64,000 nt of DNA, taken from positions 142,529 to 206,528 of the IMG/VR virus record IMGVR_UViG_3300025364_000003, one strand, 5' to 3'. Positions 44,551-62,571 of the stretch are shown one piece after another (position 1 is the first letter of the stretch; the number at the start of each line of letters is the position of its first letter). The position numbers were made by a program, and so were the translations under genes. The notes beneath the pieces are model-generated. The model ran no database searches. It saw only the letters and a list, made by a program, of their open reading frames with translations, and had not been told where the DNA came from.

Positions 44551-44559
44551 TAGAGTAAA

Positions 44560-46221: not shown

Positions 46222-48483
46222 ATGACAGATCTTTTTACAGAAGCAGTAAGGGACGCTGAAAAGCTTAAGGAAATCGCAGAGGCCGATGCGAAGAAAGCCT
46301 TAATTGAAGAACTCACCCCTTACATTAAAAAAGTAATTGCGAAGGAAGCTATGGGTTCCTCGGACTTCTTCTTTGAACAGGAAGATGAAGAGGAGGTTTC
46401 GCCTCAACTACCACCAGACCCTCAGGGTATGGGTGGTACACAACCAACCACTGCTCCAGCCGGCACAACTGATCCGACTCAAACGGTTGCAGGAGAGCTT
46501 GGCGATCAAACAGTGGACGCCCCAGTTCCTGCACCTGGCGGTGAGGATTTGGTTGGTGCTTCTATGCCAGATGAAGATGGAAAGATCGTTGTTGATTTCG
46601 AAGATCTTTTTGTAGACGCTGACTCGGATCAGGTTACAATTACGCCTGGAGAGGCACCACTCCAAGCAGCAGGTGCTCCAGCAGGTGCACAGCCAACTCA
46701 GCCGACAGAGCCAGCTGCTGTGCCAGCTCCAGAAACTGCTGGTCCAGCAGCACCAGTTCAACCAGCTGCTGGTGAGCCAACTGAAGAAGAAGAGGAAGTT
46801 GCACCGCTTCCAACAGAGGCGGTTTCTTATAAAGAATACAATAGGGTCCTTAGTAATATTTCTGAACGGATTGATCGAGCTTATTTCTCAGGACGAGTTT
46901 CTGACATCACGAGAAGTTCTCTTAAAAAGAGACTTTTTGATTTAGTCGAAGCTTTGGATGGAATGCGAGATCGGGGCCTAATTACTAACAAACAAGCTCG
47001 TCTCAACGAAAACAAGTTAGAATTTTTATTCTTAAAGCTGAAAGAGGCAGGTTTGGATAATAGTTACTTGAAGAAAGAACAAGGTAAAGGTACCGATATG
47101 ACAAGTCTCAAAGAATTTGCAGCAAAACTTTTCGAGGAAGATGAAAACCTCGCTAAGGATTCTGCTCACACTGGCGAGTCCGGTTTGAAAGTTGATGACG
47201 AATATTCACGTCACGCAGCTGATGTATCTGGTGTTGATCCACATCTTGGTGGTCCCGAAGACGTTGAAGTCGCTCAGGAGGGCAAGCTTGCCGAAGAGAT
47301 GAAGGGTGGAACCGCTGGCTCTGTTGATGCAGATGCAATTAGTGGCGATGTGCACGATCGTCCTTGGGATGAGGCCGAGCCTGTTGTTGATGAGGAAGAT
47401 CAGGATCAAACCGTTACTCGTTCAATGAATGAGAACAGCGCAGACGCAAACACTGATGCAAATGATGACGTTGCAGAAGGTGCAGCTGGCTTTGGTGACA
47501 CTAACGAAGAACCAGTCGCAGAGTTTGAAGTTGATGACGCCGAACTTGCAGAGGCAGTAAGGGCAATCCGCAAGGAAAATATCAAACGTAAGCTTGATGC
47601 TCTTAGAGAAGCTTCCGACGGCAAAGAAGCAGAGTCATGGGAAGATGCCGAACCAGAAGGTGGTGATGACGGTTCCCATGAGAACCTTGAGGACAGGAAA
47701 CATAAGAGCAATCTTAAAATGAAAGAAAGCATGTACGAAATGGATATGATGGAAGATGATGACCTTGGTGTTGATGATGCCGCAGATCTTGTTCTTTCGG
47801 TAGACCTTCCGCCAGAGGTTGAAGAAGAGTTGGCAGCACTTGGTGTTGATGATCTTGACGTAGACGTTGATCTCAATGTAGGTGCTGAGGATGAGGAAGT
47901 TGAAATCGTTGATGACGAGGATGACGAAATGGATGTTGACCTTGGTGGCGACGTAGACGATATGGAATCCGCAGAAGAAGACATGGTTCTTGCAGATGAG
48001 ATGGAAGAGGCAATGCACATGGAATCCCGTAAGTTCAAACACCTCGCACGTAAGAACAGACTTCTTGAAAAGAAGCTCGCAAAGGCTGTCAAGCTTCTTG
48101 AAGCAAGAGGCAAGCAGGTTGAAGGATTGAACAGACAGCTCGCAGAGACCAACTTGTTCACTTCAAAGACAGTTTACTACAGCAAATTCCTTCAGAGAGC
48201 ACTCTCTGAAAAAGCACTCACCAAGAAGGCTCTACAGCAAATTGTCGAGCACCTTGACAAGGGTGCATCCGTAGCCGAGACAAAGGCTATTTACACAAAA
48301 ATTAAGCGCAGGCTCGACGAGCATGCATCAGCTTCCCGCAAATTGGGTGGTTCTTCCTCTAAGGTGACCAAACCAGGGAGCGCAAACCTCACTGAGGCCG
48401 CTCAGCCACAGGCAGGTCATGATTCCAATGGCCAATCCGCAAATCGCTGGCAGGTACTTGCCGGGATCAAAAAGGTTGACTAA
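46222..48483 (+). CDS. Prohead scaffold/core protein, T4 gp22-like
   Basis: Very acidic; coiled-coil C-terminal region (QLAETNLFTSK..Y, QIVEHLDKGASVAETKAIY); ends RWQVLAGIKKVD; immediately upstream of the capsid gene. Confidence 0.8.
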   Translation: MTDLFTEAVRDAEKLKEIAEADAKKALIEELTPYIKKVIAKEAMGSSDFFFEQEDEEEVSPQLPPDPQGMGGTQPTTAPAGTTDPTQTVAGELGDQTVDAPVPAPGGEDLVGASMPDEDGKIVVDFEDLFVDADSDQVTITPGEAPLQAAGAPAGAQPTQPTEPAAVPAPETAGPAAPVQPAAGEPTEEEEEVAPLPTEAVSYKEYNRVLSNISERIDRAYFSGRVSDITRSSLKKRLFDLVEALDGMRDRGLITNKQARLNENKLEFLFLKLKEAGLDNSYLKKEQGKGTDMTSLKEFAAKLFEEDENLAKDSAHTGESGLKVDDEYSRHAADVSGVDPHLGGPEDVEVAQEGKLAEEMKGGTAGSVDADAISGDVHDRPWDEAEPVVDEEDQDQTVTRSMNENSADANTDANDDVAEGAAGFGDTNEEPVAEFEVDDAELAEAVRAIRKENIKRKLDALREASDGKEAESWEDAEPEGGDDGSHENLEDRKHKSNLKMKESMYEMDMMEDDDLGVDDAADLVLSVDLPPEVEEELAALGVDDLDVDVDLNVGAEDEEVEIVDDEDDEMDVDLGGDVDDMESAEEDMVLADEMEEAMHMESRKFKHLARKNRLLEKKLAKAVKLLEARGKQVEGLNRQLAETNLFTSKTVYYSKFLQRALSEKALTKKALQQIVEHLDKGASVAETKAIYTKIKRRLDEHASASRKLGGSSSKVTKPGSANLTEAAQPQAGHDSNGQSANRWQVLAGIKKVD

Positions 48484-48538
48484 CGGAAAATAGATATTTT
48501 AACACATACTTAGAAACAGGAGATTTGAGGAGAATACC

Positions 48539-50461
48539 ATGAAGACTTTCACTTTAGAGCAACTCGCAGAAGGCGTACACCGTCGCTCGCTTGGTGCAGA
48601 CTCACCACGACTCGTAAAGAAGTGGGGAGCAACTGGTCTTCTTGAGGGCCTAAAAGGCATGAACCGAGATGGCATGGCACGTCTTCTTGAGAACCAGGCA
48701 GCTGAGCTTCTCAAGGAAACCAACGCTTTGTCCCTTGGTGGTGCTTCTTTGACCTCAAGCGGGAAGATTGCAGGTTTCACAAACGTTGCATTCCCAATCG
48801 TTCGCCGTGTTTTCGCAGGTTTGATTTCAAACGAGATCGTGTCGGTTCAGCCAATGAGCCTTCCAACCGGTCTTCTTTTCTACCTCGATTACACTTACGG
48901 CAGCTCGGTTGGTGGTGACGCAGGAACCGCAGCTAACCAGTTTGCAACAACTAGCGTTGTAGATCCATCAACTTACACCAGCCAGGATTCCGTATACAAC
49001 AACCCACGTGGTGTTGGCGTACGTTCTGGTTCTCTTGCAACCGGTGGACAGTATGACCTTGTAGGTCATGGTTACTCCAAGGTTCACAAGCAGAGCCGTT
49101 TCCTTTCTGGTTCAACCGACTCTGTTGGTTACTGGGCATCTGGCTCCATTTGGACCCCAGGTGGCACAGTAGACACCGCTGATGACTTCGAAGGTCTCAA
49201 CGCACGTTTCGTCATGTACGATACTCGTGTTGAAAACGACCTTACCGATGGCGTACTTGATTACTGCTTCGTGTTTGTCAGCGCATCTGAGTTTACCGAC
49301 AAGATCAACGGTGCTGACCTCAACAACCTCAACCAGATTGCACTCACCGGTTTCGGTGCAGCAACCAACTCTGCTGTTGAGTGGGGAGAGAAGTATCAAG
49401 GTGGTCGAGGCGTGCTTAACCTTCGTCAGATGAACCAGCGTGGTAACTGGAACTCAGCAACTGGTATCTTCACACCAGATCCGCTTAACGGTTCACACGT
49501 GCTTCACGTAGTTCGTCTTGCAAATGCAGGTACCGCACCAGCACCTGATGGAGCTGTCGGTAATGCAGTAACTGCTTCGGCAGCTATCGCAGACGCACTC
49601 AGCGTAAACTCTGACGGTTCAACTCTTACGATTCCAAGCTTCGAGTCTGACTTCGCAGTCGACGCAAGCCCACGTATCCCAGAGGTTGACATCCGCATTG
49701 AGTCCACCAGCGTTACGGCACAAACCCGTAAGCTCAGGGCTCGTTGGTCGCCAGAAATGGCTCAGGATCTCACAGCATTCTACTCAATCGATGTAGAAGT
49801 TGAGCTTACAAACATTCTCTCCGAGATGATTACGCTTGACATTGACCGTGAAATCTTGAACGACCTTCTCACCCAGGCAGGAGCAGCAAACCTCTACTGG
49901 TCCCGAGCACCAGGTAAGCTTGTCAACAAGTTCACCGGCGCAGAGGCTCTCCAGAGCAGCACGCTTTCTCCAGGCCCAATGGCATTCGTAAACATTCAAG
50001 AGTGGTACCAGACCCTCCTTGAGACTGTTACGGACGCAGCAAACACCATTCACCGTAAGACACTCCGTGGTTCCGGTAACTTCATTGTTACTTCCCCAGA
50101 TGTCTGCACCATCCTTGAGCACCTTGTTGCCTACAAGCCTTCCTACAGAGTAGATGCTGACGGTCAGGTTCGTGACAACATGGTAATCGGAGCAGAGGCA
50201 GTTGGTACTTTGAACAACCGTTACACGGTCTACAAAGACCCATATTTCCCAAGCAACAAGCTCTTGATCGGATTGAAGGGTAACACCTTCCTTGAGTCAG
50301 GATTCATCTACGCACCATACGTGCCACTTATCCTTACTCCAGTTATCTACGCTCAGGAAGACTTTACTCCACGTAAGGGCGTCATGACCCGATACGGTAA
50401 GAAGATGGTCAGAAATGACTTCTACGCAACCGTAACTGTTCTTGACATGGGTATAATTTAA
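48539..50461 (+). CDS. gp23: Major capsid protein, T4 gp23-like
   Basis: KKWGATGLLEGL, FPIVRRVF, SVQPMSLPTGLLFYLD, TRKLRARWSPE.AQDL, EITLDIDREIL, YAPYVPL, FTPRKGVMTRYGK. Confidence 0.96.
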   Translation: MKTFTLEQLAEGVHRRSLGADSPRLVKKWGATGLLEGLKGMNRDGMARLLENQAAELLKETNALSLGGASLTSSGKIAGFTNVAFPIVRRVFAGLISNEIVSVQPMSLPTGLLFYLDYTYGSSVGGDAGTAANQFATTSVVDPSTYTSQDSVYNNPRGVGVRSGSLATGGQYDLVGHGYSKVHKQSRFLSGSTDSVGYWASGSIWTPGGTVDTADDFEGLNARFVMYDTRVENDLTDGVLDYCFVFVSASEFTDKINGADLNNLNQIALTGFGAATNSAVEWGEKYQGGRGVLNLRQMNQRGNWNSATGIFTPDPLNGSHVLHVVRLANAGTAPAPDGAVGNAVTASAAIADALSVNSDGSTLTIPSFESDFAVDASPRIPEVDIRIESTSVTAQTRKLRARWSPEMAQDLTAFYSIDVEVELTNILSEMITLDIDREILNDLLTQAGAANLYWSRAPGKLVNKFTGAEALQSSTLSPGPMAFVNIQEWYQTLLETVTDAANTIHRKTLRGSGNFIVTSPDVCTILEHLVAYKPSYRVDADGQVRDNMVIGAEAVGTLNNRYTVYKDPYFPSNKLLIGLKGNTFLESGFIYAPYVPLILTPVIYAQEDFTPRKGVMTRYGKKMVRNDFYATVTVLDMGII

Positions 50462-50491
50462 ATTATTCCTGCCCTCGCCGGCAAAAAAACG

Positions 50492-50521
50492 AAAAAGCGA
50501 CCACTTGTTGGTCGCTTTTTT
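50492..50521 (+). terminator. Intrinsic terminator after the capsid gene
   Basis: AAAAAGCGACCA-CTTGT-TGGTCGCTTTTTT. Confidence 0.85.
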
Positions 50522-50571
50522 CTTTTAAAATTCCCTTGTGTTTTCAAGGCCCACCCGCTATTTTTGATATT

Positions 50572-50608
50572 GTTACTGTGTTAGATATGGGGGTATATAT
50601 CCTGCCCT
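50572..50608 (+). repeat. Diverged second copy of the capsid-gene 3' end
   Basis: GTTACTGTGTTAGATATGGGG encodes VTVLDMG, as does 50432-50452; TCCTGCCCT follows both copies. Confidence 0.6.
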
Positions 50609-50645
50609 ATGCGCCCTATTCTATAGTATAGAGTGGAAGGCAGTA

Positions 50646-51539
50646 ATGAAAATATTTTTACACGGATATGCAAATAAGCGTGGTATTTATAAAATTACTA
50701 ATACAAAAAATGGACGTTATTATTATGGATCCGCTTCTCGTTTAAAAGAACGAGCTTATTCTCATCGGGACGATTTGCGCAGAAATAGGCATGCGAATTT
50801 GTTTTTACAAAGAGATTATAACAAATGTGGCGAAGATGCATTTATATTTGAAGCAATAGAAACAGTAGATGGAGCCAGGGAAGAACAACTCGCTAAAGAA
50901 CAGGCTTACCTTGATAAATTTTTTGATGGAGGAAACGAATGTTACAACCTTTGTCCAAAAGCAGAAAGTAGAGAAGGTAGCAAAAATGTTCGTCCATTTA
51001 ACCCAGAAACAGACGGGCGAGTAACATCACGAACGCCAGAAGTGTGTGCTATTGTAAGCAAGAAAAACAAAAAGACGTGGAACACACCAAAGAAAAAAGA
51101 AGAAGCTCTCAAGAACGCTCAAAAGCGTTGGGATAACCATTCTGCTGATGTAACCGTCACCAATAAAAAGACTGGTGAAACTGTTACCATTGAAGGTTCT
51201 GTCAGGTCTTGGTGCCAAGAAAGAAATCTCTCTTATAAGTCATTTCATTTAATGCTCAAAGGCAAGACTAAATCTTCAGGCGGTTGGTTTCTTGGCACGG
51301 AAGAACCGACTTACGTGGAACGCAAGGGTGAAAAAAGAAAACCTTTGTCGGATGAACATAGAGCCAAGATAGCGGGTGGTAAATATGCTGGTGTTGTCTT
51401 GAAGAACAAGGTGTCTGGTGAGATGTTTGTGGTTGGTGAGAATGCCAAAGCTGATTGCCGTGAGCGTGGCATTTCATATTCAAGCTTTGCAAAAATGATG
51501 AGTGGTAAGTGTAAAAGTGCTTCTGGTTGGATAGTCTAA
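50646..51539 (+). CDS. Free-standing GIY-YIG homing endonuclease
   Basis: GIYKITNTKNGRYYYGSA..R, HAN..LQRDYNK.GEDAF, EQAYLD, YNL; two C-terminal SYxSF..M..GK.KS..GW repeats. Confidence 0.9.
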   Translation: MKIFLHGYANKRGIYKITNTKNGRYYYGSASRLKERAYSHRDDLRRNRHANLFLQRDYNKCGEDAFIFEAIETVDGAREEQLAKEQAYLDKFFDGGNECYNLCPKAESREGSKNVRPFNPETDGRVTSRTPEVCAIVSKKNKKTWNTPKKKEEALKNAQKRWDNHSADVTVTNKKTGETVTIEGSVRSWCQERNLSYKSFHLMLKGKTKSSGGWFLGTEEPTYVERKGEKRKPLSDEHRAKIAGGKYAGVVLKNKVSGEMFVVGENAKADCRERGISYSSFAKMMSGKCKSASGWIV

Positions 51540-51561
51540 GTTTTTACTAACAAGATTTTAG

Positions 51562-51585
51562 AGCCTCGTCAAAGACGAGGCTTTC
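51562..51585 (+). terminator. Probable terminator hairpin
   Basis: AGCCTCGTC-AAA-GACGAGGCT followed by a short T tract. Confidence 0.55.
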
Positions 51586-51610
51586 GTTGTTAAAGTCACT
51601 ATTTATACTA

Positions 51611-52225
51611 GTGAACAGTAACCTAAAATCGTTATTAACCTTTCTTGAATCCAGTGCTCAACATGAGGCACTCGAATACGGAACGGAACCAAAAGATGAG
51701 GTTGCTTATCCACCATTTATAAAAAAGCTCGCCAAAGAAGTGGAATTGTTGGATAGAAAAGTTCAAAAGGCATATGAAGAGGGGGATCCCAATGCTACAG
51801 AACTTGATGTGTTGTTTGCAATGAAGCAAGAACAGTTGGAAACTGCCTTATCAGAGTTAGAAGACGAGCCGAAAGAAACTGACTTCGAGGATGAATTTCA
51901 AAGTGGCGGGCAAGAAGAAATGATGAGGCAATTTGCTTCAATCTACCGACATTGGCATGAAAAGATTCCTTATCAGGGTGTCATGTTGGACAAACAACAA
52001 CTTCTTGAGTTTCTTCGTGCTTGGGCTAGAGATTACGGCTTTAGACTTGGTGGATTCAAGGAAGAGACAACTGACGAGCAGCTTTTAGATGCAGCCAAAG
52101 ATTCATATGAGCGCATGAAATATCTAATCAACAAAAAGCAAGTTGTTGAACACAAAGCGTTGAATCTCGAATCTCTCTTGTCGGTCCTTGAACAAGCCGA
52201 ACTTGAAGCGTGTTTGGACGAATAA
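51611..52225 (+). CDS. Hypothetical acidic protein
   Basis: GTG start after CTATTTA; LKSLLTFLES and LESLLSVLEQ motifs. Confidence 0.6.
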   Translation: MNSNLKSLLTFLESSAQHEALEYGTEPKDEVAYPPFIKKLAKEVELLDRKVQKAYEEGDPNATELDVLFAMKQEQLETALSELEDEPKETDFEDEFQSGGQEEMMRQFASIYRHWHEKIPYQGVMLDKQQLLEFLRAWARDYGFRLGGFKEETTDEQLLDAAKDSYERMKYLINKKQVVEHKALNLESLLSVLEQAELEACLDE

Positions 52226-52319
52226 CGAAGCTTGAATTCAATAATTGTTGTGTCACATTGCTCAAGAGAGCATACAAAAACTTCATACTAAAAAAGTATG
52301 ATGATTACTTGGAGTAGAA

Positions 52320-52691
52320 ATGTTAACAGAAAGACGTCTTAAGAAACTCGCTGGGCTTATAAAAGAATATGAAGAGGGTCTAATGGTCGGGGAAACGTAT
52401 CAAAGCTGGCTTGACGAACATGGCAAATTACCATCCTTGCCATCTAAGGCAGCAGACAAAATCGTGTACTCGCTTCATGACCTTGAAACGGAAACCGATA
52501 CAGAAGGATACGACGAACTTCAGATAAGCGTTGGTCGCTTACCTAAAGATCTTAAGTTAAAGATTGGTGATGAAATCCTGGTAGTTCCATCAGGATGGTA
52601 TTATTCAACTGAGTCAGAATGGGGCGGACCTAATGTACATGGCCCGTTTGATTCAAAAAAAGAAGCTAGAAACGCAGCAGTGTTTGGCTAA
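52320..52691 (+). CDS. Hypothetical protein with R.KKLAGL leader
   Basis: MLTERRLKKLAGLIKE. Confidence 0.65.
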   Translation: MLTERRLKKLAGLIKEYEEGLMVGETYQSWLDEHGKLPSLPSKAADKIVYSLHDLETETDTEGYDELQISVGRLPKDLKLKIGDEILVVPSGWYYSTESEWGGPNVHGPFDSKKEARNAAVFG

Positions 52692-52695
52692 TTGA

Positions 52696-53520
52696 TTACT
52701 GATCAAACAGGTACTCTAGGAGTCCTTCAACTACTGATTTTGGTTTCTTTTTATTTATCTTCTTTTTCTTCGTTGGATATTTGCCATGAATGTTTGGTGG
52801 ATTCTTTACGGCTTTCCAGATAAACCAAGTAACAGCTTGAAGTTCTTGTGGAGTCAATCCAACTAGGTCTGCTACTTTTCTGTAATCATGAATGATAGCT
52901 TCTCTTTCAGCCTTTGTTGGTTGTCTTAGATCTTGGAGACGTGTTTTAATTCCTCTCCACACATTGATTGCATGTCCATCAAGAACCAACTCTCTTTCGA
53001 CTCTGTCGGGATTCAACAAAGAATGAAAAAACACGGAAACCTTTGGACCTGCAACAAGACCAACATCTCCGGTGTCGAGGATCTTCAAAGCTTTATAAAC
53101 GTTCGATTTGTATGCAGGAACTTTTTCAAGTGGCCCCAAATCACGTTCGCCTTCAAGCATCAACCAGTTTTCTATTAGCCTCTGTGCGGCCAAGAGATTG
53201 ACTTTCCAGCCAAGGTTCGGACTGAGAACGGCAACAACGGCAGCGGTAACTGGCAACGGCAGCTCATATCTTTCTGCTAATTCTCTTACGTGTTGATGAG
53301 CATGTTGATACCAGTTGCTCCAGTAGTCGATTTCATCTTTGGTTGCTTTTTTCAGTACAGAAAGAATATTATGATAACTTTCGTTTTTTTGAAGATTCAT
53401 TTTTTCATGAGGGATTTTTTTCCTACTTGGTTCATTTAGAACGAAGTCTAAGCCGAATCTTTCCCTCTCATCATAATCGGCTTCAAGGAGCCATTTTAAT
53501 AGTCGTTCAACGTTTCCCAT
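52696..53520 (-). CDS. Conserved phage protein, possible HhH-glycosylase-like fold
   Basis: WYQHAH, AAVVAVLSPNLGW..N, GPKV..F, VLDGHA, ELQAVTW. Confidence 0.55.
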   Translation of the reverse strand: MGNVERLLKWLLEADYDERERFGLDFVLNEPSRKKIPHEKMNLQKNESYHNILSVLKKATKDEIDYWSNWYQHAHQHVRELAERYELPLPVTAAVVAVLSPNLGWKVNLLAAQRLIENWLMLEGERDLGPLEKVPAYKSNVYKALKILDTGDVGLVAGPKVSVFFHSLLNPDRVERELVLDGHAINVWRGIKTRLQDLRQPTKAEREAIIHDYRKVADLVGLTPQELQAVTWFIWKAVKNPPNIHGKYPTKKKKINKKKPKSVVEGLLEYLFDQ

Positions 53521-53528
53521 GGAGATAA

Positions 53529-53798
53529 CTATTTCTTTTCTATTCTAAAAACCAGTGGTCTCTTGCAATTTGGACCTTTAATAACCCTGTGCCATGTCTT
53601 GGATTTAATAAACAATGTTCCTTCCATTAGCTTGGGTATTTCATTGTCGTATTGGAACCACCAGTCATCAGCTTGCATTACTTCAACAATTCGGTCTTCT
53701 TTATCTCGGTGCCAAACCAACTCTTCCGAATCGACATTTGGGTCGAACTCACGGATTACAACATTAGTTGATAACGTCTTTTCTTTGAACGGAAACAT
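53529..53798 (-). CDS. Small cupin-like conserved phage protein
   Basis: ELVWHRDKEDRIVEV...WHRVIKG; TAATG-coupled start at 53798. Confidence 0.7.
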   Translation of the reverse strand: MFPFKEKTLSTNVVIREFDPNVDSEELVWHRDKEDRIVEVMQADDWWFQYDNEIPKLMEGTLFIKSKTWHRVIKGPNCKRPLVFRIEKK

Positions 53799-54403
53799 TA
53801 CCACCAACGATACGATTTAGATGCGCCTGTCAATGACGGATAACGACCAATTCTACATGACCAGTAACCTGCGGTACAACGATCGTTTTTATCCTCACAA
53901 TTGTGTCTAGCGGCAAAAGATTTTCGGCGTTCAGGATCTGATACTTTCACACTCATATCTGGTGAACCAAAGGAGATTTTCTTGACTTTATCCCCGCATT
54001 TTTGATAAACATAAAACTTTTTGGATCCACCACGCTTTGGTTTGCCAAGTTCAACATCTTTTCCTTGATACTCGGCCTCATCAAGCATTTCGCTTCCTTC
54101 GATCATCGGAATGCCGAGAGGAACTTTTTTGTTTTCGTAGATGGCAAACTCACCAACGCCTTGTTCGATCAATTCTTTTTCTTGTTCAGAGAGTTGAATT
54201 TTGCCTTCGGTGTAAAGTTCTTTCATTTCCCTCATTAGGGAAAAGAACGCTTTCGACTTTACACGATAAATGTTGTCATAAAAACTGATACCATTTTCAA
54301 GATGAAATCGCATTCCCTCTGACAAGACACGCCCATACTTGTTCTTTTCAATCTCTTCTTTGACAAGCTTGTTAATTTCTTCTTCCAGTGTTTGTTTTGC
54401 CAC
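53798..54403 (-). CDS. Conserved phage protein with leader helix
   Basis: LEEEINKLVKEEIE; KKFYVY..VKKISFG...ERRKSFAARHNC...AGYWSCR. Confidence 0.7.
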   Translation of the reverse strand: MAKQTLEEEINKLVKEEIEKNKYGRVLSEGMRFHLENGISFYDNIYRVKSKAFFSLMREMKELYTEGKIQLSEQEKELIEQGVGEFAIYENKKVPLGIPMIEGSEMLDEAEYQGKDVELGKPKRGGSKKFYVYQKCGDKVKKISFGSPDMSVKVSDPERRKSFAARHNCEDKNDRCTAGYWSCRIGRYPSLTGASKSYRWW

Positions 54404-54451
54404 ATTTATGCTCCTGATTGCTAATTATTCGGGTAAAACTAGTTGGACCAA

Positions 54452-55696: not shown

Positions 55697-55702
55697 GCAC
55701 GT

Positions 55703-56548
55703 ATGAGCAATAAACTAAGATGGAAAAAATTAGCAGGACTTCTTACTGAAGGATATGAAGATCGCTGGCCTTCCCGTGAAGACGAAGAAGAAGAATTGGC
55801 CGATCTAAAATCAAAAGCAGAACCAAGACTTCCTCGAACTGTTGTTGTTGATGATGAAGAATATATTGGTGGTCGTCGGGCACCAGCCTGGATGCGTTCG
55901 GACTACGATCCAAAGAGTGATTCATATGCTTTTGATCTTGACTACAACCCGTATAAAGAATTAGATGAGCAAGTTGACATGGTTGCAGATATGAATGCGC
56001 CAGTTGAACCAGTAATTTCTGGACTTGCTCCTATCTCAAGTTTGGAGCAACAAAGAGATGATGTCAGAGATGAAATCGATGATGTCAAGAACTGGCTCGC
56101 TGGATACGTTTCTTATCTTAGAGCAATTCATCTTTGGTTTCACGCAGCTCATCATCTTACCAAAGGCACTGGATTCGCTGGTGACCATGAAGACCTTTAT
56201 GGAAGGATATATACTGAAGTCCAAGATGAGATTGATGGCGCCATAGAAAAAGCTGTCGGTGTTACCAACGATGAATTGCTTGCTTGCCCTCTGATGATTA
56301 CAAGCAACGCTGTTGAAATAATGGAAGAAGCAGGTTGTAAGGTAAGCGACAGTGCTCACAATATCGCAAAAGCCGGACTTCGTCTTGAAAAAGCTTATAT
56401 AAAATTTGTTGAGGAAATGTTTGCAACTTTGGAAGAAATGGATGCCATGACGCTTGGTTTGAATGATCAACTTGCATCATCAGCCAACACTCACGAGACG
56501 TATGTTTATCTTCTTCAGCAAAGAGTTAAGGATAGCAAAAAATTGTGA
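55703..56548 (+). CDS. Dps/ferritin-like domain protein with RWKKLAGL leader
   Basis: HLWFHAAHHLTKGTGFAGDHEDLYGRIY...IDGAIEK...HETYVYLL. Confidence 0.7.
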   Translation: MSNKLRWKKLAGLLTEGYEDRWPSREDEEEELADLKSKAEPRLPRTVVVDDEEYIGGRRAPAWMRSDYDPKSDSYAFDLDYNPYKELDEQVDMVADMNAPVEPVISGLAPISSLEQQRDDVRDEIDDVKNWLAGYVSYLRAIHLWFHAAHHLTKGTGFAGDHEDLYGRIYTEVQDEIDGAIEKAVGVTNDELLACPLMITSNAVEIMEEAGCKVSDSAHNIAKAGLRLEKAYIKFVEEMFATLEEMDAMTLGLNDQLASSANTHETYVYLLQQRVKDSKKL

Positions 56549-56551
56549 TAA

Positions 56552-56941
56552 TTAAACTACTTTTTTAACTCTCAAAGCACATCTTTCTGGTTTCAAACCA
56601 TTTAACCAGCCTCTTGATGTTTCTACAACATATTTGACCGGGGGAGTCTTGTAAAGTGTTTGTGTTCCTGATTTCATGGGAATAAAACAAACCAAATGGC
56701 CATTTTTATCAAATCCAAGCAAATCTAAATCAAACATTACATTATTCATGTGAAAATGGCGAGAAGATTCTTCATCAAACAAAAACAATAAGCCTTCGCC
56801 TGGTTTTGGAATGTCTTTTTCGAATTGATATCCGCAGGCTCTTTCGGCATCGGTGCTAAGCACACGCATTTTAATTGGTGCGTCACCAATTCTTCCATGA
56901 CAAAAAACGTGCATAAACGTAATTAGGACAAAGTAAGACAT
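56552..56941 (-). CDS. DUF192 (UPF0127)-like protein
   Basis: EGLLFLF, FHMNNVMFDLDLLGFD, YVVETSRG. Confidence 0.75.
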   Translation of the reverse strand: MSYFVLITFMHVFCHGRIGDAPIKMRVLSTDAERACGYQFEKDIPKPGEGLLFLFDEESSRHFHMNNVMFDLDLLGFDKNGHLVCFIPMKSGTQTLYKTPPVKYVVETSRGWLNGLKPERCALRVKKVV

Positions 56942-57022
56942 GGAGTTCGATGATAAACTTTTTTATTTGACTATTTATATCTACAGGATTTCATACGAAT
57001 CTTCAAAAAACCGTTGCAACCA

Positions 57023-57029
57023 CTATTTA
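57023..57029 (+). promoter_or_regulatory. Candidate late-promoter element CTATTTA (representative copy, upstream of tail tube)
   Basis: CTA(A/C/T)TTA recurs within ~7-60 nt upstream of many virion genes (see findings). Confidence 0.5.
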
Positions 57030-57056
57030 AGCAAAGGAACAGTCGGAGAATAAACA

Positions 57057-57548
57057 ATGGCAGAGACACTTACAGTAACAGATATGCTTCCTACTAAGTT
57101 TGAACCACTTGCAAAACGTAGGTTCTTGCTTGCTATTGAAGGCATTGACTCCTTTATCGTAAAAACCGCAGCTAGACCAACATACACCACAGAGGAAATT
57201 ACAGTCAACTGGATCAACCACACTCGTTACCTCGCAGGTAAGACAACCTTCAGTACAATTTCAGTAACTCTTCACGATCCAATCGCACCTGCTGGTGCGC
57301 AGCAAGTTATGGAGTGGGTGCGTCTTTGCTTTGAATCTGTTTCTGGCCGTGGTGGTTACGCTGATTTCTACAAGCGTGACATCCAACTCAAGATGCTTGA
57401 CCCAGTTGGTACCGTAGTTCAACTTTGGGACATCAAGGGTGCATTCATTACAGAAGCAAACTTCAACGACGTTTCCTATGATTCAACTGCTGACCTTGCA
57501 GAAATCTCATTGACCATTCGCTTCGATAACGCAGTTTTGCAGTTTTAA
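57057..57548 (+). CDS. gp19: Tail tube protein, T4 gp19-like
   Basis: FEPLAKRRF, TLHDPIAPAGAQQVMEW, YKRDIQLKMLDPVG.VV..W.IKGAF, LTIRFD. Confidence 0.9.
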   Translation: MAETLTVTDMLPTKFEPLAKRRFLLAIEGIDSFIVKTAARPTYTTEEITVNWINHTRYLAGKTTFSTISVTLHDPIAPAGAQQVMEWVRLCFESVSGRGGYADFYKRDIQLKMLDPVGTVVQLWDIKGAFITEANFNDVSYDSTADLAEISLTIRFDNAVLQF

Positions 57549-57589
57549 AATATATTTGTTCGCAGTACACAAATATCAAACAACATGGT

Positions 57590-57623
57590 AAACTCTCCTT
57601 AGAAGACAGTTCAAGGAGAGTTT
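57590..57623 (+). promoter_or_regulatory. Hairpin sequestering the SD of the downstream HNH gene
   Basis: AAACTCTCCTT (57590-57600) pairs with AAGGAGAGTTT (57613-57623); GTG start at 57625. Confidence 0.7.
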
Positions 57624-57624
57624 T

Positions 57625-58470
57625 GTGTTTAAGTGCCCTTTGTGCAAAAACCAATATGAAAAACTTATTTCTTTGTCTGTCCATTACAGAAAAGGGCACA
57701 AGAAAAAGTCAAAAGATTTAATTGTTGACTTGTATTACAATGGCAGAGAGCCCACGTGTGCTTGTGGTTGTGGCGGGGAAGTAAAATTTCTTGATATAAC
57801 TCGTGGGTTTCGTGAATTTATTCATGGACACGCAGCACGCATACCAGAAAAAAATAATTTTGTTTCAAACAAAGCCCAACAAAACAGCGCTAAAACACGT
57901 AAAAAGATGATTGAAAGTGGAGGCTGGAAACCATTTCACCTAAAAGAAACTAGTGAACATTGGGGCAAAGGTTTATCAAAAGAAACCGACGACCGCATAG
58001 CCAAAATGGCTAACTCCATTAAAACAAATAAAGTTGAAATTGAAAAACGTTCAAAACGTATGCGCAAAGGACGTTTAGATGGAACAATACCGACACTTCA
58101 CAAAGAGAACCATAGCCAATGGAAAGGTGGTATCAGCCCACTAAATCAATATTGTCGTAGTAGTATTAAACTTTATTCAAATTGGAAATATCCTTTGCTT
58201 AAAGCGGCAAAATTTCAATGTGTCATGTGTAAAAAACCTGGTCCTGGCTTGGAAATACATCACAACAAAGAAACAATGTCTTCCATAATTCGTAAATTTG
58301 CTAAAAAATTTAAATGGGATCATTATTACAACAGCAATGCACCAGCAAATGATCAAAATTTGATTAATATCAAAGATCAAATTGCAGAAGCCGTTGCTGA
58401 CTACCACATTCAAAACAATGTGTCCGGCGTTGTCCTGTGTTCCAAATGTCACAGTAAAGAACATAACTAA
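57625..58470 (+). CDS. Free-standing HNH-type homing endonuclease with N-terminal zinc finger
   Basis: CPLC..HYRKGH, CACGCG..FIHGHA, SQWKGG, CVMC...EIHHNKE...VVLCSKCHSKEH. Confidence 0.8.
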   Translation: MFKCPLCKNQYEKLISLSVHYRKGHKKKSKDLIVDLYYNGREPTCACGCGGEVKFLDITRGFREFIHGHAARIPEKNNFVSNKAQQNSAKTRKKMIESGGWKPFHLKETSEHWGKGLSKETDDRIAKMANSIKTNKVEIEKRSKRMRKGRLDGTIPTLHKENHSQWKGGISPLNQYCRSSIKLYSNWKYPLLKAAKFQCVMCKKPGPGLEIHHNKETMSSIIRKFAKKFKWDHYYNSNAPANDQNLINIKDQIAEAVADYHIQNNVSGVVLCSKCHSKEHN

Positions 58471-58489
58471 TTTCAGCTTTGCAACCCAG

Positions 58490-58520
58490 AAAAGACCTGG
58501 CCAAAAGCCAGGTCTTTTCT
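58490..58520 (+). terminator. Intrinsic terminator
   Basis: AAAAGACCTGGC-CAAAA-GCCAGGTCTTTT. Confidence 0.8.
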
Positions 58521-58543
58521 ATTTAAGCTTGTCGGAGTATGAA

Positions 58544-58849
58544 ATGAAAATAACCAAGTCACAACTTAGAGAAATGATCCGAGAAGCCATCAATGAACAG
58601 GTTGGCGGAAACGATATTCTACAACAAGACTTAGGAGGAGAAGGAAAAGAGCTTCTCGATACTTTTATTCAATCTATGGATGAAGCAGTACAAGCTTGGT
58701 ACGCATTACACTATTGGCTTGAACCGTCTGAAGAAGCAGATGTAGCAATGTTACAAGAGTTAGGTAAGGAAGTCGGGAATTTTATTGTTGATGAGAACTT
58801 GACTGCATGGCTTAACAGCCTTGCAGAAAAAGCAAAAGCTGACAAGTAA
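58544..58849 (+). CDS. Hypothetical protein with KITKSQLRE leader
   Basis: ATG 58544 with GGAG SD: MKITKSQLREMIREAINEQ. Confidence 0.7.
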   Translation: MKITKSQLREMIREAINEQVGGNDILQQDLGGEGKELLDTFIQSMDEAVQAWYALHYWLEPSEEADVAMLQELGKEVGNFIVDENLTAWLNSLAEKAKADK

Positions 58850-58874
58850 GACATTTTGAATCTAATTGATGTTT

Positions 58875-58903
58875 GCCATACTCATAGTATGGCTTTTTCT
58901 TTT
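58875..58903 (+). terminator. Probable intrinsic terminator
   Basis: GCCATAC-TCATA-GTATGGC followed by TTTTTCTTTT. Confidence 0.6.
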
Positions 58904-58925
58904 AAAAATTCCTGGAATATTTTTA

Positions 58926-59317
58926 ATGTTTAGTTCTGAAGGTGTGCTCAAGTATTTCATAATTGACGAAAGCAATTATAAGCTAACGCTTTTGGTCGAT
59001 ACGGAGATTGCTCGTTATTATCGTAATTTCGTTCCAAAGTCTCAGAAGTGTCGGCCTGGTCGTTATGCACCTCATATTACAGTTGTTAGAAATGAACGAC
59101 CTTTGAATATGAAAAAGTGGGGCTTGTATGAGAACAAAGTGATTAGCTTTGAGTATGAACCCTACATTTGGTATGATGAAACTTATTGGTGGCTTAATTG
59201 CCACTCTTCCTTCTTGAAAAAACAAGAGAAGAACTTGGATTACCAAAATGGGCAAAGTGGAACATGCCTCCAAGTGGAAAAGCTTGTTTTCATATGACAA
59301 TAGGCAATTCAAAATAG
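58926..59317 (+). pseudogene. 2H-phosphoesterase-family protein split by a -1 frameshift at A6 (59217-59222)
   Basis: First motif APHITVV; the -1 frame continues TREELGLP...CFHMTIGNSK*, supplying the second HxT. Confidence 0.7.
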
Positions 59318-59360
59318 GAACAACCATTCAGTATCCGCTAGTTAAGCTTATAGGATTATC

Positions 59361-59573
59361 GTGGCCAAAATCTTAAAAGAGCGATGGATGAAATTGGCTG
59401 GCTTACTCAAGGAAGCTGATGATTTGGAAATTGATATACAGGATTCAGATGATTCATCTTCTGAGTGGCAGAGAGACAAAAAACGCTCTGATGAAGAAGA
59501 GCCTGGTTGGGATCCTGCTGATGAAGATGAATGGCTTGCAGAAGAATTAGGTTCTTGGCATTCGGAAGGTTGA
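59361..59573 (+). CDS. Small acidic protein with RWMKLAGL leader
   Basis: MAKILKERWMKLAGLLKE followed by a D/E-rich tail. Confidence 0.7.
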   Translation: MAKILKERWMKLAGLLKEADDLEIDIQDSDDSSSEWQRDKKRSDEEEPGWDPADEDEWLAEELGSWHSEG

Positions 59574-59574
59574 T

Positions 59575-60033
59575 ATGAATAAAATAAACAAAAACAGATG
59601 GCAACAGCTCGCTGGACTCAAGGAGTCTTCTGTAGGAACAGAAGAAAGAGAACGGCTTAATGAAGGTTTTATGAATCTTGGAATGGCAAGTCCAGCACCA
59701 ATGGGTAATCCATTCGGCAATCGTCCTAAACAACCGGAATACAATTTTGAGGGAATTTTAGAAGAGATGGCTCCAGAATTGGATCCTGATAAAATTGAAG
59801 TTGAGCCTGATGAAGACCACGAGGGTTCTATGGCCAGAGGTCAACTTGAAAAAATCCGCAAATATTCCAAAGAATTGCTTTTAAAGCTTCCAGAAGATGC
59901 GCAACTTGAAGCTTGGGTGCAAAGCAAGCTTACTCTCGCAGCAGAAATGATGGACGTTGTAGCACACTATCTTCAAGATGAAGCTGGCGATGATCAGGAT
60001 GATGAGCACGGCCTCGAAAAAGATGTCAAATAA
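59575..60033 (+). CDS. Conserved phage protein with RWQQLAGL leader
   Basis: MNKINKNRWQQLAGLKE; DHEGSMARGQL...EAWVQSKLTLA. Confidence 0.7.
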   Translation: MNKINKNRWQQLAGLKESSVGTEERERLNEGFMNLGMASPAPMGNPFGNRPKQPEYNFEGILEEMAPELDPDKIEVEPDEDHEGSMARGQLEKIRKYSKELLLKLPEDAQLEAWVQSKLTLAAEMMDVVAHYLQDEAGDDQDDEHGLEKDVK

Positions 60034-60720
60034 AATAATAAAAGAGAGATGGCAGCGGCTTGCTGGTATTGTTAAAGAATCGTCTTATCACATGGCCAAA
60101 CATGACCATGTTGCAAGTGTTGTTAATAAACATGTGGCTGGCCTAATCAAAGACCTTGAGCTTGATCCAGTAGATGCCCCAGAAGTCTTCGATGATCTTA
60201 CTCATAACATTAAACGATATCTCTCTTCCGTACTAGGAGAATCAACATCTTCGATAGCTGAAAGAACATCACCTGAAGCGGCCCAGGACGTCGCTGCTTA
60301 CTTTGGAACTAATGATTCGGTAGATGGGCCATATAAAAAAGTTTCGGCTTTACAGCCCTTCCAAGACGCCAAACATCGTAAGAAATTTTTAAAAGCCATA
60401 CATGCAGAAGGTGCCTTGGGGAAAGCAAGTATCCGGAGACTGCATCGGAATATGCCGAGCTTCTTAACAAGCAGTCAAAAGGACCATTTAAACTAGTTGT
60501 CGATCCTTCTCATTGGGAACAATATGACGTAAGAACCGGTGAAGATTTAGCAAAATATTTGGCAATTGAGACTTATAGGGATGTATACAAGGATGTTTAC
60601 GGAATTCGTCCTCGGCGTAGTCTGGAAGACAAGTCTGTTGAAGAGATCGAAGCTATGATTGATTCTTTGTCGGAAGATTTTGAAGAAGACGACGATTCAT
60701 GGCTGCGCAATATAGACTAA
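60023..60720 (+). pseudogene. Leader-bearing protein split by a -1 frameshift at G4 (60418-60421)
   Basis: MSNKIIKERWQRLAGIVKE...AEGALG; continues in the -1 frame as GESKYPETASEYAELL...VVDPSHWEQY...YKDVYGIRPR...D/E tail to TAA 60720. Confidence 0.65.
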
Positions 60721-60770
60721 ATCAAGAACTCATCGTATGCTAATCGGTAATTAGCAAACAAAGGCAAGCC

Positions 60771-61433
60771 GTGCAAGATACGAAACAAACCTTTTTTAAA
60801 CAGATTGATAGATACTTTAATCGTTCACTTGATGAAGTTGCCTCTAATTTAGAAAAAATTGGCAGCAAACGAACCGATCCAAATTTGAATCAACATGCAT
60901 TTAGAGGGGAAGTAACTTTAGAAGAAGTAGTTCATATAAAACCAAAAGTTTCTAAATTCGTTCCAGGTACTTTGCTTACATCTCCAGAGGGTATTGACAA
61001 CTACGAAGAAAACGATTTTGGCGTTGGTAACTTAACGTGTGCCAGTTCAGAAGAAATGGAAGCAAATATTGTTTTGGGTCCCACGAAAGAGATTTCTGAA
61101 ATTGGGAAAACCAAAAGATTTCTTGTTCCAGAAACTATCATGATTACAGATGAGTTCATACAAATTCGCAAGCACACAACGGTAAAAGCAGCAGAAAATT
61201 TTGAAAAGTCTTGTCATAAAAACATCGTTTTTTATACCGTTAAACATGTTTTACATGTTTTAGACAATAAAAACAAGCTTACTATACCGACTAATATGTT
61301 TAAAGAAGACAATGGACAATTCAGCTCAGATTTGGTAATGTTTGATACATTTGATTATGATCTTGTAATGCATTTATATGACACTGCCAAGCCTGAGGAA
61401 ATTGTGAAACCGTTGTCCATATTCAACAAATAG
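60771..61433 (+). CDS. Hypothetical protein
   Basis: 220-aa ORF followed by a terminator. Confidence 0.6.
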   Translation: MQDTKQTFFKQIDRYFNRSLDEVASNLEKIGSKRTDPNLNQHAFRGEVTLEEVVHIKPKVSKFVPGTLLTSPEGIDNYEENDFGVGNLTCASSEEMEANIVLGPTKEISEIGKTKRFLVPETIMITDEFIQIRKHTTVKAAENFEKSCHKNIVFYTVKHVLHVLDNKNKLTIPTNMFKEDNGQFSSDLVMFDTFDYDLVMHLYDTAKPEEIVKPLSIFNK

Positions 61434-61437
61434 ACAC

Positions 61438-61460
61438 GGCGGCCGAATGGCCGCCTTTTT
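61438..61460 (+). terminator. Intrinsic terminator
   Basis: GGCGGCC-GAAT-GGCCGCC followed by TTTTT. Confidence 0.8.
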
Positions 61461-61472
61461 CTATTTAAATGC

Positions 61473-61721
61473 ATGCTTCAGAAACTTTCAAAACTTTTCA
61501 CCGAACATCCAGGAGAACAGGGAGAAACTTATTGGCAGCACGCTAAATTTGCCCTCGGTGTTTCTTTTCATTTTTTTATTTCTGCTATTTTTTTGATTTT
61601 GCATGCTTTATTTCCTTTTGTTTGCCCACCAAAACCATTTGAATTATCATCGACAATAAACTACTTAACCAAGAAATGCGATAATCGCAAGGCCGATAAA
61701 AGTGGGCCGCCGTATCCATAG
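61473..61721 (+). CDS. DUF6356-like small membrane protein
   Basis: LFTEHP...GETYWQHAKFA, then hydrophobic LILHALFPF. Confidence 0.65.
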   Translation: MLQKLSKLFTEHPGEQGETYWQHAKFALGVSFHFFISAIFLILHALFPFVCPPKPFELSSTINYLTKKCDNRKADKSGPPYP

Positions 61722-61755
61722 TATGGATTTACCAGATTGGTTCGAGGGAAAAAAA

Positions 61756-62571
61756 ATGACAAAAATTCTTAAAGAACGTTGGATGAGATTGGCCGGAGTG
61801 TTACAAGAAAAGACCGAGCCTAATCCAGGCGAAGACCGCCTTAAGGATGCTAAGCATTATGTAAGAAATGCTATGGAAGCACTTCAAACTGCCATCGAAA
61901 AAGGCTTGGATGAAGATCAAGAGATGGCAAAGGAAATTGAGGGCCAGCTTTCAACTGCTTACAAAAAGCTTACTGGTGCCGAAGAAAGCGACCGAAAAAA
62001 CATTGGCGAAGCACAGTTTGCAAAAGATGCGTTAGAAGACATTGAAACACTTTGGCAGCCTAAGCCAGGTGAAGATTATGAACTCGGCGTAGATTATCAG
62101 CAACCTCCAACAATGATTGGTTCGGTTCAAGATGAAGAGTTTTCTTTAGATGATTTTGATCCAGAAGATGAAGGGCTTACCATCAGAGAACCAGGTTACG
62201 AGACTGATCCAGAGTATGATGAGGATCAACTAGGCGATCTTTATGGTTCTACGTGGGAAGAAGAAGAGGAACGTACCCATTGGGGGGAACCGGTATTTAG
62301 AGATACAGATATTGGCAGAAAAAGCGACTTCATTAAGAGAAAAAGCGACTTCATTAAGTCAGAAGATGCCACACAGGCCGAGGATAAGCAATGGAGCAAG
62401 TCGGATTTGCAATACGCTGCGCAATATTTTTGGACAAGCGTTAATCGAAGAGGGAATGATTACGAAGACGCACTAAACTTTGCAAGTAACAATTTCGACA
62501 TTCCAAAAGATGTGCTTGAAAAGGCATATGACGATTTTGAAAAGGAATATGACACGATGTACATCTTTTGA
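61756..62571 (+). CDS. Acidic protein with RWMRLAGV leader
   Basis: ATG 61756: MTKILKERWMRLAGVLQE. Confidence 0.7.
   Translation: MTKILKERWMRLAGVLQEKTEPNPGEDRLKDAKHYVRNAMEALQTAIEKGLDEDQEMAKEIEGQLSTAYKKLTGAEESDRKNIGEAQFAKDALEDIETLWQPKPGEDYELGVDYQQPPTMIGSVQDEEFSLDDFDPEDEGLTIREPGYETDPEYDEDQLGDLYGSTWEEEEERTHWGEPVFRDTDIGRKSDFIKRKSDFIKSEDATQAEDKQWSKSDLQYAAQYFWTSVNRRGNDYEDALNFASNNFDIPKDVLEKAYDDFEKEYDTMYIF
62317..62358 (+). repeat. Perfect 21-nt tandem duplication (RKSDFIK x2)
   Basis: AGAAAAAGCGACTTCATTAAG at 62317-62337 and 62338-62358. Confidence 0.9.

Follow-up and report, generated by a model that had tools for sequence, protein, structure and literature searches.

The C-terminal peptide of a putative phage scaffold protein recurs at the N-termini of six unrelated proteins and looks like a capsid-addressing tag

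A T4-like phage with a genome of roughly 461 kb carries, on the front of six unrelated proteins, the short peptide that ends its putative head-scaffold protein, and each copy is followed by a likely protease cut site. The arrangement looks like a previously undescribed address label for loading proteins into the phage head. The analysis covered a 64-kb stretch of the genome (IMG/VR record IMGVR_UViG_3300025364_000003; hereafter, the window). The motif R-W-x-x-L-A-G-[LIV] occurs seven times in the window, against about 0.1 expected, and all copies are on the + strand. One is at the C-terminus of the acidic protein encoded just upstream of the gp23-like capsid gene, and six lie 5–9 residues after the start codons of unrelated genes. 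A preliminary description had reported these seven copies, and all of them are where it placed them. It had also inferred that a coat-binding peptide of the scaffold was reused as a portable, cleavable tag that loads cargo into the prohead, and this interpretation is supported only in part. Portability, identity with the conserved C-terminus of the scaffold-position protein, a T4-type site between tag and cargo in both orientations, and a capsid propeptide site aligned with that of T4 gp23 are borne out by comparative evidence, while binding to the coat protein, packaging, processing, and a protease encoded by this genome remain inferences.

The putative prohead scaffold (nt 46,222–48,483, +) is a protein of 753 aa with a pI of 4.3 and 20 [LI]-x-E sites, encoded directly upstream of the capsid gene, the same position as T4 gene 22 and the equivalent gene in the cultured phages immuto and Mel-JY01. 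Its N- and C-terminal regions match the same-position protein of relatives. A profile comparison (hhalign) with gp22 of T4 and P-HM2 was not significant (E 0.06, probability 0.9%), so the assignment rests on synteny and composition. The protein ends ...NRWQVLAGIKKVD immediately before the stop codon (nt 48,445–48,483), this terminal copy of the peptide (tag A) being RWQVLAGIKKVD, and it also has an L-T-E site (residues 723–725) 19 residues before the motif. The neighbouring gp23-like major capsid protein (nt 48,539–50,461, +; 640 aa) was identified by tblastn and by a match to phrog_138 (E 3e-72). Its N-terminal propeptide carries LAE, LLE, LLE and LKE sites, and the LKE at residues 58–60 aligns with the LTE at residues 63–65 of T4 gp23, the end of the 65-residue T4 propeptide (PMC5694885).

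The six N-terminal copies are in genes starting at nt 52,320, 55,703, 59,361 (GTG), 59,575, 60,023 and 61,756, and the R of the motif is residue 6–9 in each. The listed ORFs at nt 59,978 and 61,702 run further upstream, but the internal ATGs at 60,023 and 61,756 give the same Met-to-motif spacing as the other four, and five of the six starts have a Shine-Dalgarno-like sequence. The T4 late promoter sequence TATAAATA is absent from the + strand upstream of the tagged genes. Every copy is followed at once by [LIV]-x-E (IKE, LTE, LKE, LKE, VKE and LQE, respectively), giving leaders of 16–19 residues. In the six-frame translation, [RK][WL]xxLAG[LIV] occurs 7 times, compared with 0.10–0.12 in shuffled sequences, and an HMM built from the seven copies scores them at 21–28 bits while the next best site in the window scores 7.5 bits. 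Conserved residues use different codons in 79 of 119 identical-residue pairs, so the conservation is at the peptide level, which rules out a recent DNA duplication or a nucleotide-level signal. The remainder of the proteins is unrelated, as no BLASTP pair has E < 0.2.

The first tagged gene (nt 52,320–52,691, +; 123 aa) has its tag and IKE site at nt 52,320–52,367, and its body, of unknown function, has no Pfam, PHROG or PDB match. The second (nt 55,703–56,548, +; 281 aa) has its tag and LTE site at nt 55,703–55,750, followed by an acidic linker predicted to be disordered (about aa 17–120) and a domain with a predicted Dps (mini-ferritin) four-helix-bundle fold (aa 121–280). The AlphaFold pLDDT is above 90 across aa 121–280 and all of the top 50 Foldseek matches in the PDB are Dps proteins (target TM-score 0.63–0.81), although profile searching gave only weak Dps hits (E about 0.1). 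H150, H162 and D178 are invariant, and E182 nearly so, across 42 homologues; two His 12 apart together with Asp and Glu 4 apart is the spacing that marks the ferroxidase centre of Dps, as in Listeria Dps. The third gene (nt 59,361–59,573, +) specifies 70 aa, 33% of them Asp or Glu, with the tag and LKE site at nt 59,361–59,414. The fourth (nt 59,575–60,033, +; 152 aa, acidic) has its tag and LKE site at nt 59,575–59,625, then a second L-N-E|G site and the conserved linker GF-x-N-L-G-M-A-x-P...G-N-P-F. The fifth (nt 60,023–60,496, +; 157 aa) is basic (pI 9.3), with the tag and VKE site at nt 60,023–60,079, and the sixth (nt 61,756–62,571, +; 271 aa) is acidic, with the tag and LQE site at nt 61,756–61,809.

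The system is not peculiar to this genome, a point not made in the preliminary description. Tag A is the near-universal C-terminus of the scaffold-position protein in a large clade, with 74 distinct copies in IMG/VR loci whose capsid protein is 54–93% identical to that of the window, each ending 0–8 residues before the stop codon. The same is seen in the cultured phages immuto (gp067, ...SRWQKLAGIIK), Mel-JY01 (...ERMKKLAGIVK) and RM378 (...ERIKRLAGL); in RM378, of which 58 kb were scanned, only the scaffold copy was found. The tail is the most conserved part of a fast-evolving scaffold, as only the N- and C-terminal regions align between the window protein and that of the related IMG/VR locus L035. 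The conservation became visible only by reading C-termini directly: searches of cultured phages with the last 147 residues of the scaffold, or with the tag itself (tblastn with a 22-residue query, which has too little power), returned no match. T4-type and cyanophage gp22 proteins also end in conserved short peptides, with a [VIL]-S-E|S site upstream in cyanophages, so a conserved scaffold C-terminal peptide is general among T4-like phages.

In relatives, tag A also sits at the N- or C-terminus of many unrelated proteins, including two in immuto (gp083 and gp230), and its C-terminal use on non-scaffold proteins was likewise missed in the preliminary description. The position of the [LIV]-x-E site mirrors the orientation of the tag and almost always lies on the cargo side. 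Of 13 N-terminal copies across loci, 11 have the site right after L-A-G, as do 25 of 26 tagged Dps homologues, while 62 of 74 C-terminal copies have it within 16 residues before the motif, mostly as L-N-E|G. Tagged genes occur in runs, like the T4 internal-protein genes, with three adjacent in the window and four and five in the related loci L096 and L107. However, the immuto tagged gene gp230 lies among non-structural genes.

A second leader, also overlooked previously, resembles T4 head-protein propeptides (motif B, MK-x-T-K-x-Q-L-R-E...). It begins the protein of nt 58,544–58,849 (+; MKITKSQLREMIREAINE; the true start is the ATG at 58,544), which lies in the same gene run as tagged genes 3–5, a conserved small head-module protein (nt 45,127–45,618, +; MKLNRTQFKKILKECIRELITE), homologues of which lie between the protease and scaffold genes in relatives, and a protein of 153 aa (nt 28,455–28,916, +; MKISKKQIRTLVREAVRVQLDE). 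Internal copies are found in a basic head-module protein of 284 aa (nt 43,137–43,991, +; motif at 43,641–43,706, ending in LTE) and in a protein with a weak ChaB-like N-terminal domain (nt 44,560–45,054, +; motif at 44,827–44,892, ending in LQE). Three more motif-B genes lie just beyond the right end of the window, and in immuto motif B is carried by gp094. Three independent cargo families, the Dps-like family, the 59,575 family and the C-terminal domain of the 61,756 protein, carry tag A in some genomes and a motif-B-type leader in others, so the leaders are swappable modules; the Dps-like family also has members with no leader. Some proteins of relatives carry motif B at the N-terminus and tag A at the C-terminus (L035, nt 12,014–12,811; L039, nt 7,954–8,931).

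Peptidase_S77 (gp21-type prohead protease) genes are present in 45 related loci and in immuto and Mel-JY01, but an HMM built from the 45 related proteases found none in the window. None was found in two contig walks of about 10 kb beyond each window end (about 18 kb examined), or in 10 kb to either side of the capsid gene in the two closest relatives (L001, L002). The protein in the syntenic slot of the protease (nt 43,969–44,550) is not a protease by BLASTP or Pfam. A scan of related loci with the protease of locus L065 gave no hit on the window's contigs among the top 80 loci, and a profile search of the protein database listed none on a 461-kb contig among the top 120 of about 8,000 hits.

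The best explanation, held with moderate confidence, is that tag A (consensus [KE]-R-W-x-[KR]-L-A-G-[IL]) is a terminal docking peptide whose original home is the extreme C-terminus of the prohead scaffold, where it would anchor the scaffold to a partner inside the assembling head, most likely the inner face or N-arm of the coat protein, with the scaffold core itself as the main alternative. In this view the peptide was copied in this lineage onto the N-terminus of unrelated proteins, and in relatives also onto the C-terminus, usually through a flexible acidic linker, so that these proteins would occupy the same docking site as the scaffold and be enclosed. A T4 gp21-type protease would then cut between tag and cargo, freeing the cargo inside the head, or degrading it if it is an accessory core protein, and the small tag peptide would leave. 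Motif B would do the same job through a probably different contact. What the sequences themselves establish is the motif, its terminal positions and modularity, the geometry of the cut sites and the conservation across the clade; binding and the identity of the partner, packaging, and cleavage are inferred, and in the literature searched no virion proteomics was found for immuto or RM378.

Other readings are possible but less likely. The address may be the same and the receptor different, the peptide binding the scaffold core (by tail-to-tail or tail-to-body association), the portal or the protease, in which case tagged proteins would co-assemble into the core. T4 capsid targeting sequences are described as targeting proteins to the scaffolding core (PMC3012670, PMC5694885), nothing in the present data identifies the receptor, and proteins carrying both motif B and tag A suggest two different contacts. 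On the other hand, it is the scaffold C-terminus that contacts the coat protein in P22 and phi29, and a conserved tail on a fast-evolving scaffold fits a slowly evolving partner such as the capsid protein. It is also possible, though doubtful, that the tagged proteins are not cargo but extra scaffold or core components of a very large head, degraded and expelled like the scaffold. Five of the six are acidic (pI 4.2–5.0) like the scaffold (pI 4.3), most are small, several have [LI]-x-E densities of 2–4 per 100 residues, and a genome of about 461 kb implies a large head. Less consistent with this are the predicted, well-folded Dps-type domain, with the ferroxidase residue spacing conserved and only two [LI]-x-E sites inside it, and the cargos of relatives, which include a WYL_2 barrel, a zinc-finger protein and a P-loop protein and look like functional payloads.

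A quite different kind of signal, such as a membrane- or compartment-targeting amphipathic helix, a degron or a chaperone tag, is very unlikely. The peptide is short, terminal, basic and hydrophobic and is found at either end, as some membrane-targeting helices and degrons are, and the phage encodes a GroEL-like protein and an actin-like Volactin. However, the invariant W and L-A-G argue for a specific protein contact, and the helical hydrophobic moment is no higher than in shuffled peptides, which speaks against a generic amphipathic helix. The universal home of the peptide at the scaffold tail next to the capsid gene, the cargo-side protease-type sites and the alternation with a leader resembling a T4 head-protein propeptide also weigh against this reading.

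The closest known system is the capsid targeting sequence of T4, found on internal proteins IPI–III, Alt and gp24 and removed by the gp21 protease; T4 internal proteins share only this sequence, which loads them into the scaffolding core and is then cleaved off (PMC3012670, PMC5694885). Common to both are a short N-terminal leader on otherwise unrelated proteins, its ending in (L/I)-x-E, clustered and variable genes, and a gp23-type capsid protein with the homologous propeptide site, and the cargo of one relative gives a weak hit to ADP-ribosyltransferase, as Alt is in T4. The R-W-x-x-L-A-G core has no counterpart in the T4 gp24 and gp23 propeptides, the two that were compared, while motif B (MKITKSQLRE...) does resemble the 10-residue gp24 propeptide (MAKINELLRE). 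Tag A differs further in being identical to the scaffold's own C-terminal peptide, in its use at either terminus and in its alternation with a second leader. Like the shell-binding tails of P22 gp8 and phi29 gp7, tag A lies at the extreme C-terminus of a putative scaffold encoded next to the capsid gene, and in most relatives cleavage just upstream would free the scaffold from its tail, as occurs at the maturation site of herpesvirus scaffolds; natural copying of the tail onto many non-scaffold proteins has not, as far as is known, been described in those systems, although it has been done in P22 by engineering. Encapsulin cargo-loading peptides likewise direct unrelated cargo, including ferritin-like proteins, into an HK97-fold shell by means of a short peptide at either terminus and a flexible linker, but their sequence motif differs, the shell here is that of a DNA-packaging phage head and the tag appears to be cleaved off, so the resemblance is an analogy and no homology is claimed. 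In the giant phages phiKZ, 201phi2-1 and SPN3US, which like this one are jumbo phages with many head proteins, the long N-terminal propeptides of ejection proteins are proposed to target proteins to the prohead and are removed by a T4-like protease (PMC5694885), but they are 80–160 residues long, are not a shared short motif and use an S/A/G-x-E-type site, and no scaffold counterpart has been identified in those phages.

A broader and more tentative possibility is that the scaffold's C-terminal peptide is a general, transferable address label for the interior of T4-like heads, such that any protein carrying it at either end competes with the scaffold for one receptor site on the gp23-type shell. 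Phages of this clade would use it, together with the interchangeable second leader, to load a changing set of payloads released by the prohead protease, those seen including a predicted Dps mini-ferritin, an SH3-like barrel, a P-loop protein and a possible ADP-ribosyltransferase. This would identify the receptor logic of capsid targeting sequences and provide a natural viral counterpart of encapsulin cargo loading. What the T4 capsid targeting sequence binds is not known to have been settled, and the identity of the cargo tag with the conserved tail of the putative scaffold yields a concrete, testable hypothesis, that cargo and scaffold share one docking site. The system is also present in a cultured phage–host pair, Flavobacterium phage immuto on Flavobacterium sp. 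LMO8, and so can be tested at the bench. It would offer a way to predict virion-internal, possibly injected, proteins directly from metagenomic sequence, would provide two short natural tags for loading foreign proteins into large phage heads, and is widespread in an abundant, mostly uncultured clade of aquatic T4-like and jumbo phages.

The window has 41.6% G+C and carries seven copies of the motif R-[WL]-x-x-L-A-G-[LIV] (here tag A), all on the + strand between 48.4 and 61.8 kb. One copy ends the 753-residue acidic protein encoded at nt 46,222–48,483, the putative scaffold, which lies directly upstream of the gp23-like capsid gene (nt 48,539–50,461), while the other six lie 5–9 residues after the start codons of genes at nt 52,320, 55,703, 59,361, 59,575, 60,023 and 61,756. 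Shuffled sequences gave about 0.1 copies, and a hidden Markov model (HMM) built from the seven copies scored them at 21–28 bits, with nothing else in the six-frame translation exceeding 7.5 bits. Identical residues use different codons in 79 of 119 pairs, and the remaining parts of the proteins share no similarity, showing that this is a peptide under selection and not a recent DNA repeat. Each N-terminal copy is followed at once by [LIV]-x-E.

The capsid protein is a divergent T4-type protein (phrog_138, E = 3e-72), and its best cultured relatives are Flavobacterium phage immuto (45% identity), Microcystis phage Mel-JY01 and Rhodothermus phage RM378. The same DNA lies on independently assembled contigs of 460,987 and 461,030 bp that are circularly permuted relative to each other, as well as on a 366-kb contig (contigs L312, L313 and L314), so that the window belongs to a jumbo phage of roughly 461 kb. 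Upstream of the putative scaffold gene are several small head-module proteins and two adjacent tail-sheath paralogues of about 1,000 aa each (phrog_23; nt 36,858–39,917 and 39,974–43,003). Downstream of the capsid gene are a GIY-YIG endonuclease gene, the tail tube gene and the tagged genes. The GIY-YIG homing-endonuclease-like gene (nt 50,646–51,539) lies immediately after the capsid gene, the same place as segD after gene 23 in T4, and homologs occupy that position in several related IMG/VR loci (L003, L007, L010, L012–L014 and L016). HNH-type genes lie at nt 57,625–58,470 and 62,686–63,411. Other genes of the window include those for a GroEL-like chaperonin (nt 3,015–4,496, − strand), a small Hc1 histone-like protein (about nt 5,090–5,300, + strand), a PIN-PhoH fusion (nt 5,745–7,082, + strand), and an actin-like Volactin gene that runs off the right end (nt 63,559–63,993, − strand). 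No portal, terminase or prohead protease gene was recognised anywhere in the 64 kb. The sequence CTATTTAA occurs five times in the window (nt 1,209, 33,200, 57,023, 58,519 and 61,461), always on the + strand and 15–40 nt upstream of a gene start. The genes concerned include the tail tube gene and two genes that head runs of leader-bearing genes, and two of the sites follow terminator-like hairpins. It is a possible promoter element, although the count alone is not significant (5 against 2.8 expected).

The C-terminal peptide of the putative scaffold is conserved across a large clade. In 80 IMG/VR loci with capsid proteins 54–93% identical to that of the window, the protein just upstream of the capsid gene almost always ends in this peptide (74 distinct C-terminal copies), the typical form being L-[NST]-E-G-x-E-x-x-R-W-A-[KR]-L-A-G-I-x-K-stop. 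The same holds for three cultured phages, in immuto gp067, the Mel-JY01 protein and RM378 p142, and an uncultured 484-kb phage has a weaker form. Immuto gp067 (NC_055915; nt 10,725–11,966 of the immuto locus, L081) is annotated as a 'DNA polymerase phi-like protein', but it lies in the scaffold position and ends in the tag, and the annotation is probably wrong. T4 gp22 and cyanophage gp22 do not carry this motif, but examination of the gp22 C-termini of T-even-type and cyanophage contigs (L316–L426) showed that they too end in conserved short peptides. In 72 cyanophage loci the ending is [VIL]-S-E|S-M-x-x-Y-V-x-x-L-A-K-R-[LI]-stop, with the [VIL]-S-E|S site 12 residues before the end, while in T-even types it is ...Y-A-K-V-A-S-R-F-stop, among other forms. 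A conserved scaffold C-terminal peptide therefore seems general in T4-like phages, and R-W-x-x-L-A-G-I is the version of this clade.

The peptide is portable. N-terminal copies occur in the closest relatives (loci L001, L002 and L016), in about 15 further IMG/VR contigs, and in two proteins of cultured immuto, gp083 and gp230, both ...R-M-Q-x-L-A-G-I-I-T-E-S. They often come in runs, with four adjacent tagged genes in locus L096 and five in locus L107. C-terminal copies on non-scaffold proteins occur in loci L035/L036, L039, L044 and L001, and an internal copy in L048 is flanked by L-x-E sites on both sides. Of 13 N-terminal copies in the loci, 11 have [LIV]-x-E right after L-A-G, as do 25 of 26 tagged Dps homologs. 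Of 74 C-terminal copies, 62 have [LIV]-x-E within 16 residues upstream, 57 of these being followed by G, A, S or N. In copies with such a site, the predicted cut thus falls between tag and cargo, whichever end the tag is on.

The capsid protein of the window keeps four such sites in its N-terminal 60 residues, the last of which, LKE 58–60, aligns with LTE 63–65 of T4 gp23, the end of the 65-residue T4 propeptide (PMC5694885). A Peptidase_S77 protease is encoded about 4 kb upstream of the capsid gene in 45 related loci and in immuto and Mel-JY01. In relatives, the slot upstream of the scaffold holds a 289-aa protein and this protease (compare L035, nt 5,278–6,748), but in the window (nt 43,137–45,054) and its two closest relatives, L001 and L002, it holds unrelated, highly variable genes, and the protease was not found in the window, in about 18 kb examined beyond its ends, or in the 10 kb to either side of the capsid gene in L001 and L002. 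Its gene probably lies elsewhere in the 461 kb, although this is only presumed.

A second, different N-terminal peptide, motif B (MK-[ILV]-[ST]-K-x-Q-[LI]-[RK]-E-[MI]-[IV]-R..., ending in L-x-E about 20 residues in), occurs five times in the window, at nt 58,544–58,597, 45,127–45,192 and 28,455–28,520, and internally in two proteins at nt 43,641–43,706 and 44,827–44,892. Three more copies lie just beyond the right end of the window (genes at nt 7,656–8,384, 6,892–7,593 and about 5,191–5,457 of contig L312). The first ten residues of motif B resemble the 10-residue propeptide of T4 gp24 (PMC9546572). Three putative cargo families carry tag A in some genomes and a motif-B-type leader in others. 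These are the Dps-like family of the gene at nt 55,703, in which 26 of 120 members have tag A, four have motif B, many have no leader and a group has a third leader; the family of the gene at nt 59,575; and the C-terminal domain of the gene at nt 61,756. Linkers between tag and domain vary in length between orthologs, and include a recurrent element after a second L-x-E|G site (G-F-x-N-L-G-M-A-x-P...G-N-P-F). In the window this element is at nt 59,656–59,715 (aa 28–47 of the gene at nt 59,575), and in the form L-x-E|G-F-x-N-[LF]-G-[ML]-A-x-P...G-N-P-F it follows the tag in several unrelated cargo families (proteins P0012, P0013, P0251, P0253 and P0257, and loci L016 and L096). It may be a second short functional motif. 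The exchange of leaders is the strongest evidence that both peptides are interchangeable addressing modules rather than parts of the folded proteins.

The gene at nt 55,703 encodes the tag followed by an acidic, predicted disordered linker and a predicted Dps-fold domain. The AlphaFold pLDDT is above 90 for residues 121–280, and the top 50 PDB fold matches of the model are all Dps. Residues H150, H162 and D178 are invariant and E182 nearly invariant, with the spacing of the Dps ferroxidase centre. The other five tagged proteins of the window have no recognisable family, four of them being acidic and one basic. In relatives, the putative cargos include a WYL_2 SH3-like barrel, a DnaJ-type zinc-finger protein and a P-loop protein. 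One tagged family (L095, nt 6,037–6,507; also L098, L101, L107 and L110) gives a weak ADP-ribosyltransferase match (PF22546, E = 6e-4, below the Pfam cut-off), which recalls the packaged T4 Alt enzyme. Protein P0252 has a tag-like leader on a P-loop domain, followed by a second internal tag and a domain like that of the gene at nt 61,756.

Most likely, the scaffold tail docks on a site inside the assembling head, and copies of the tail on other proteins use the same site, so that those proteins would be enclosed, after which the prohead protease would separate tag from cargo. The motif, its placement, its exchange with motif B and the position of the predicted cut sites come directly from the sequences, while docking, enclosure, cleavage and the identity of the receptor are inferred. 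The coat protein is favoured as receptor by analogy with other phages, but the scaffold core is the main alternative because T4 targeting sequences are described as targeting the core (PMC3012670). Some of the tagged acidic proteins may be accessory core components rather than delivered payload. A signal unrelated to the capsid, such as a membrane-targeting sequence or a degron, is unlikely given the invariant W and L-A-G, the unremarkable hydrophobic moment of the peptide and the geometry of the protease sites.

The principle of a short, cleavable N-terminal address shared by diverse head proteins is that of the T4 capsid targeting sequence. Full-text searches, which did not extend to subscription journals, found no description of this motif or of packaged Dps in phages. 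What is new here is the identity of the tag with the terminal peptide of the putative scaffold itself, its use at either terminus, the coexistence and exchange of two leaders, a putative cargo with a predicted Dps fold, and the clade-wide distribution of the tag in jumbo and T4-like aquatic phages.
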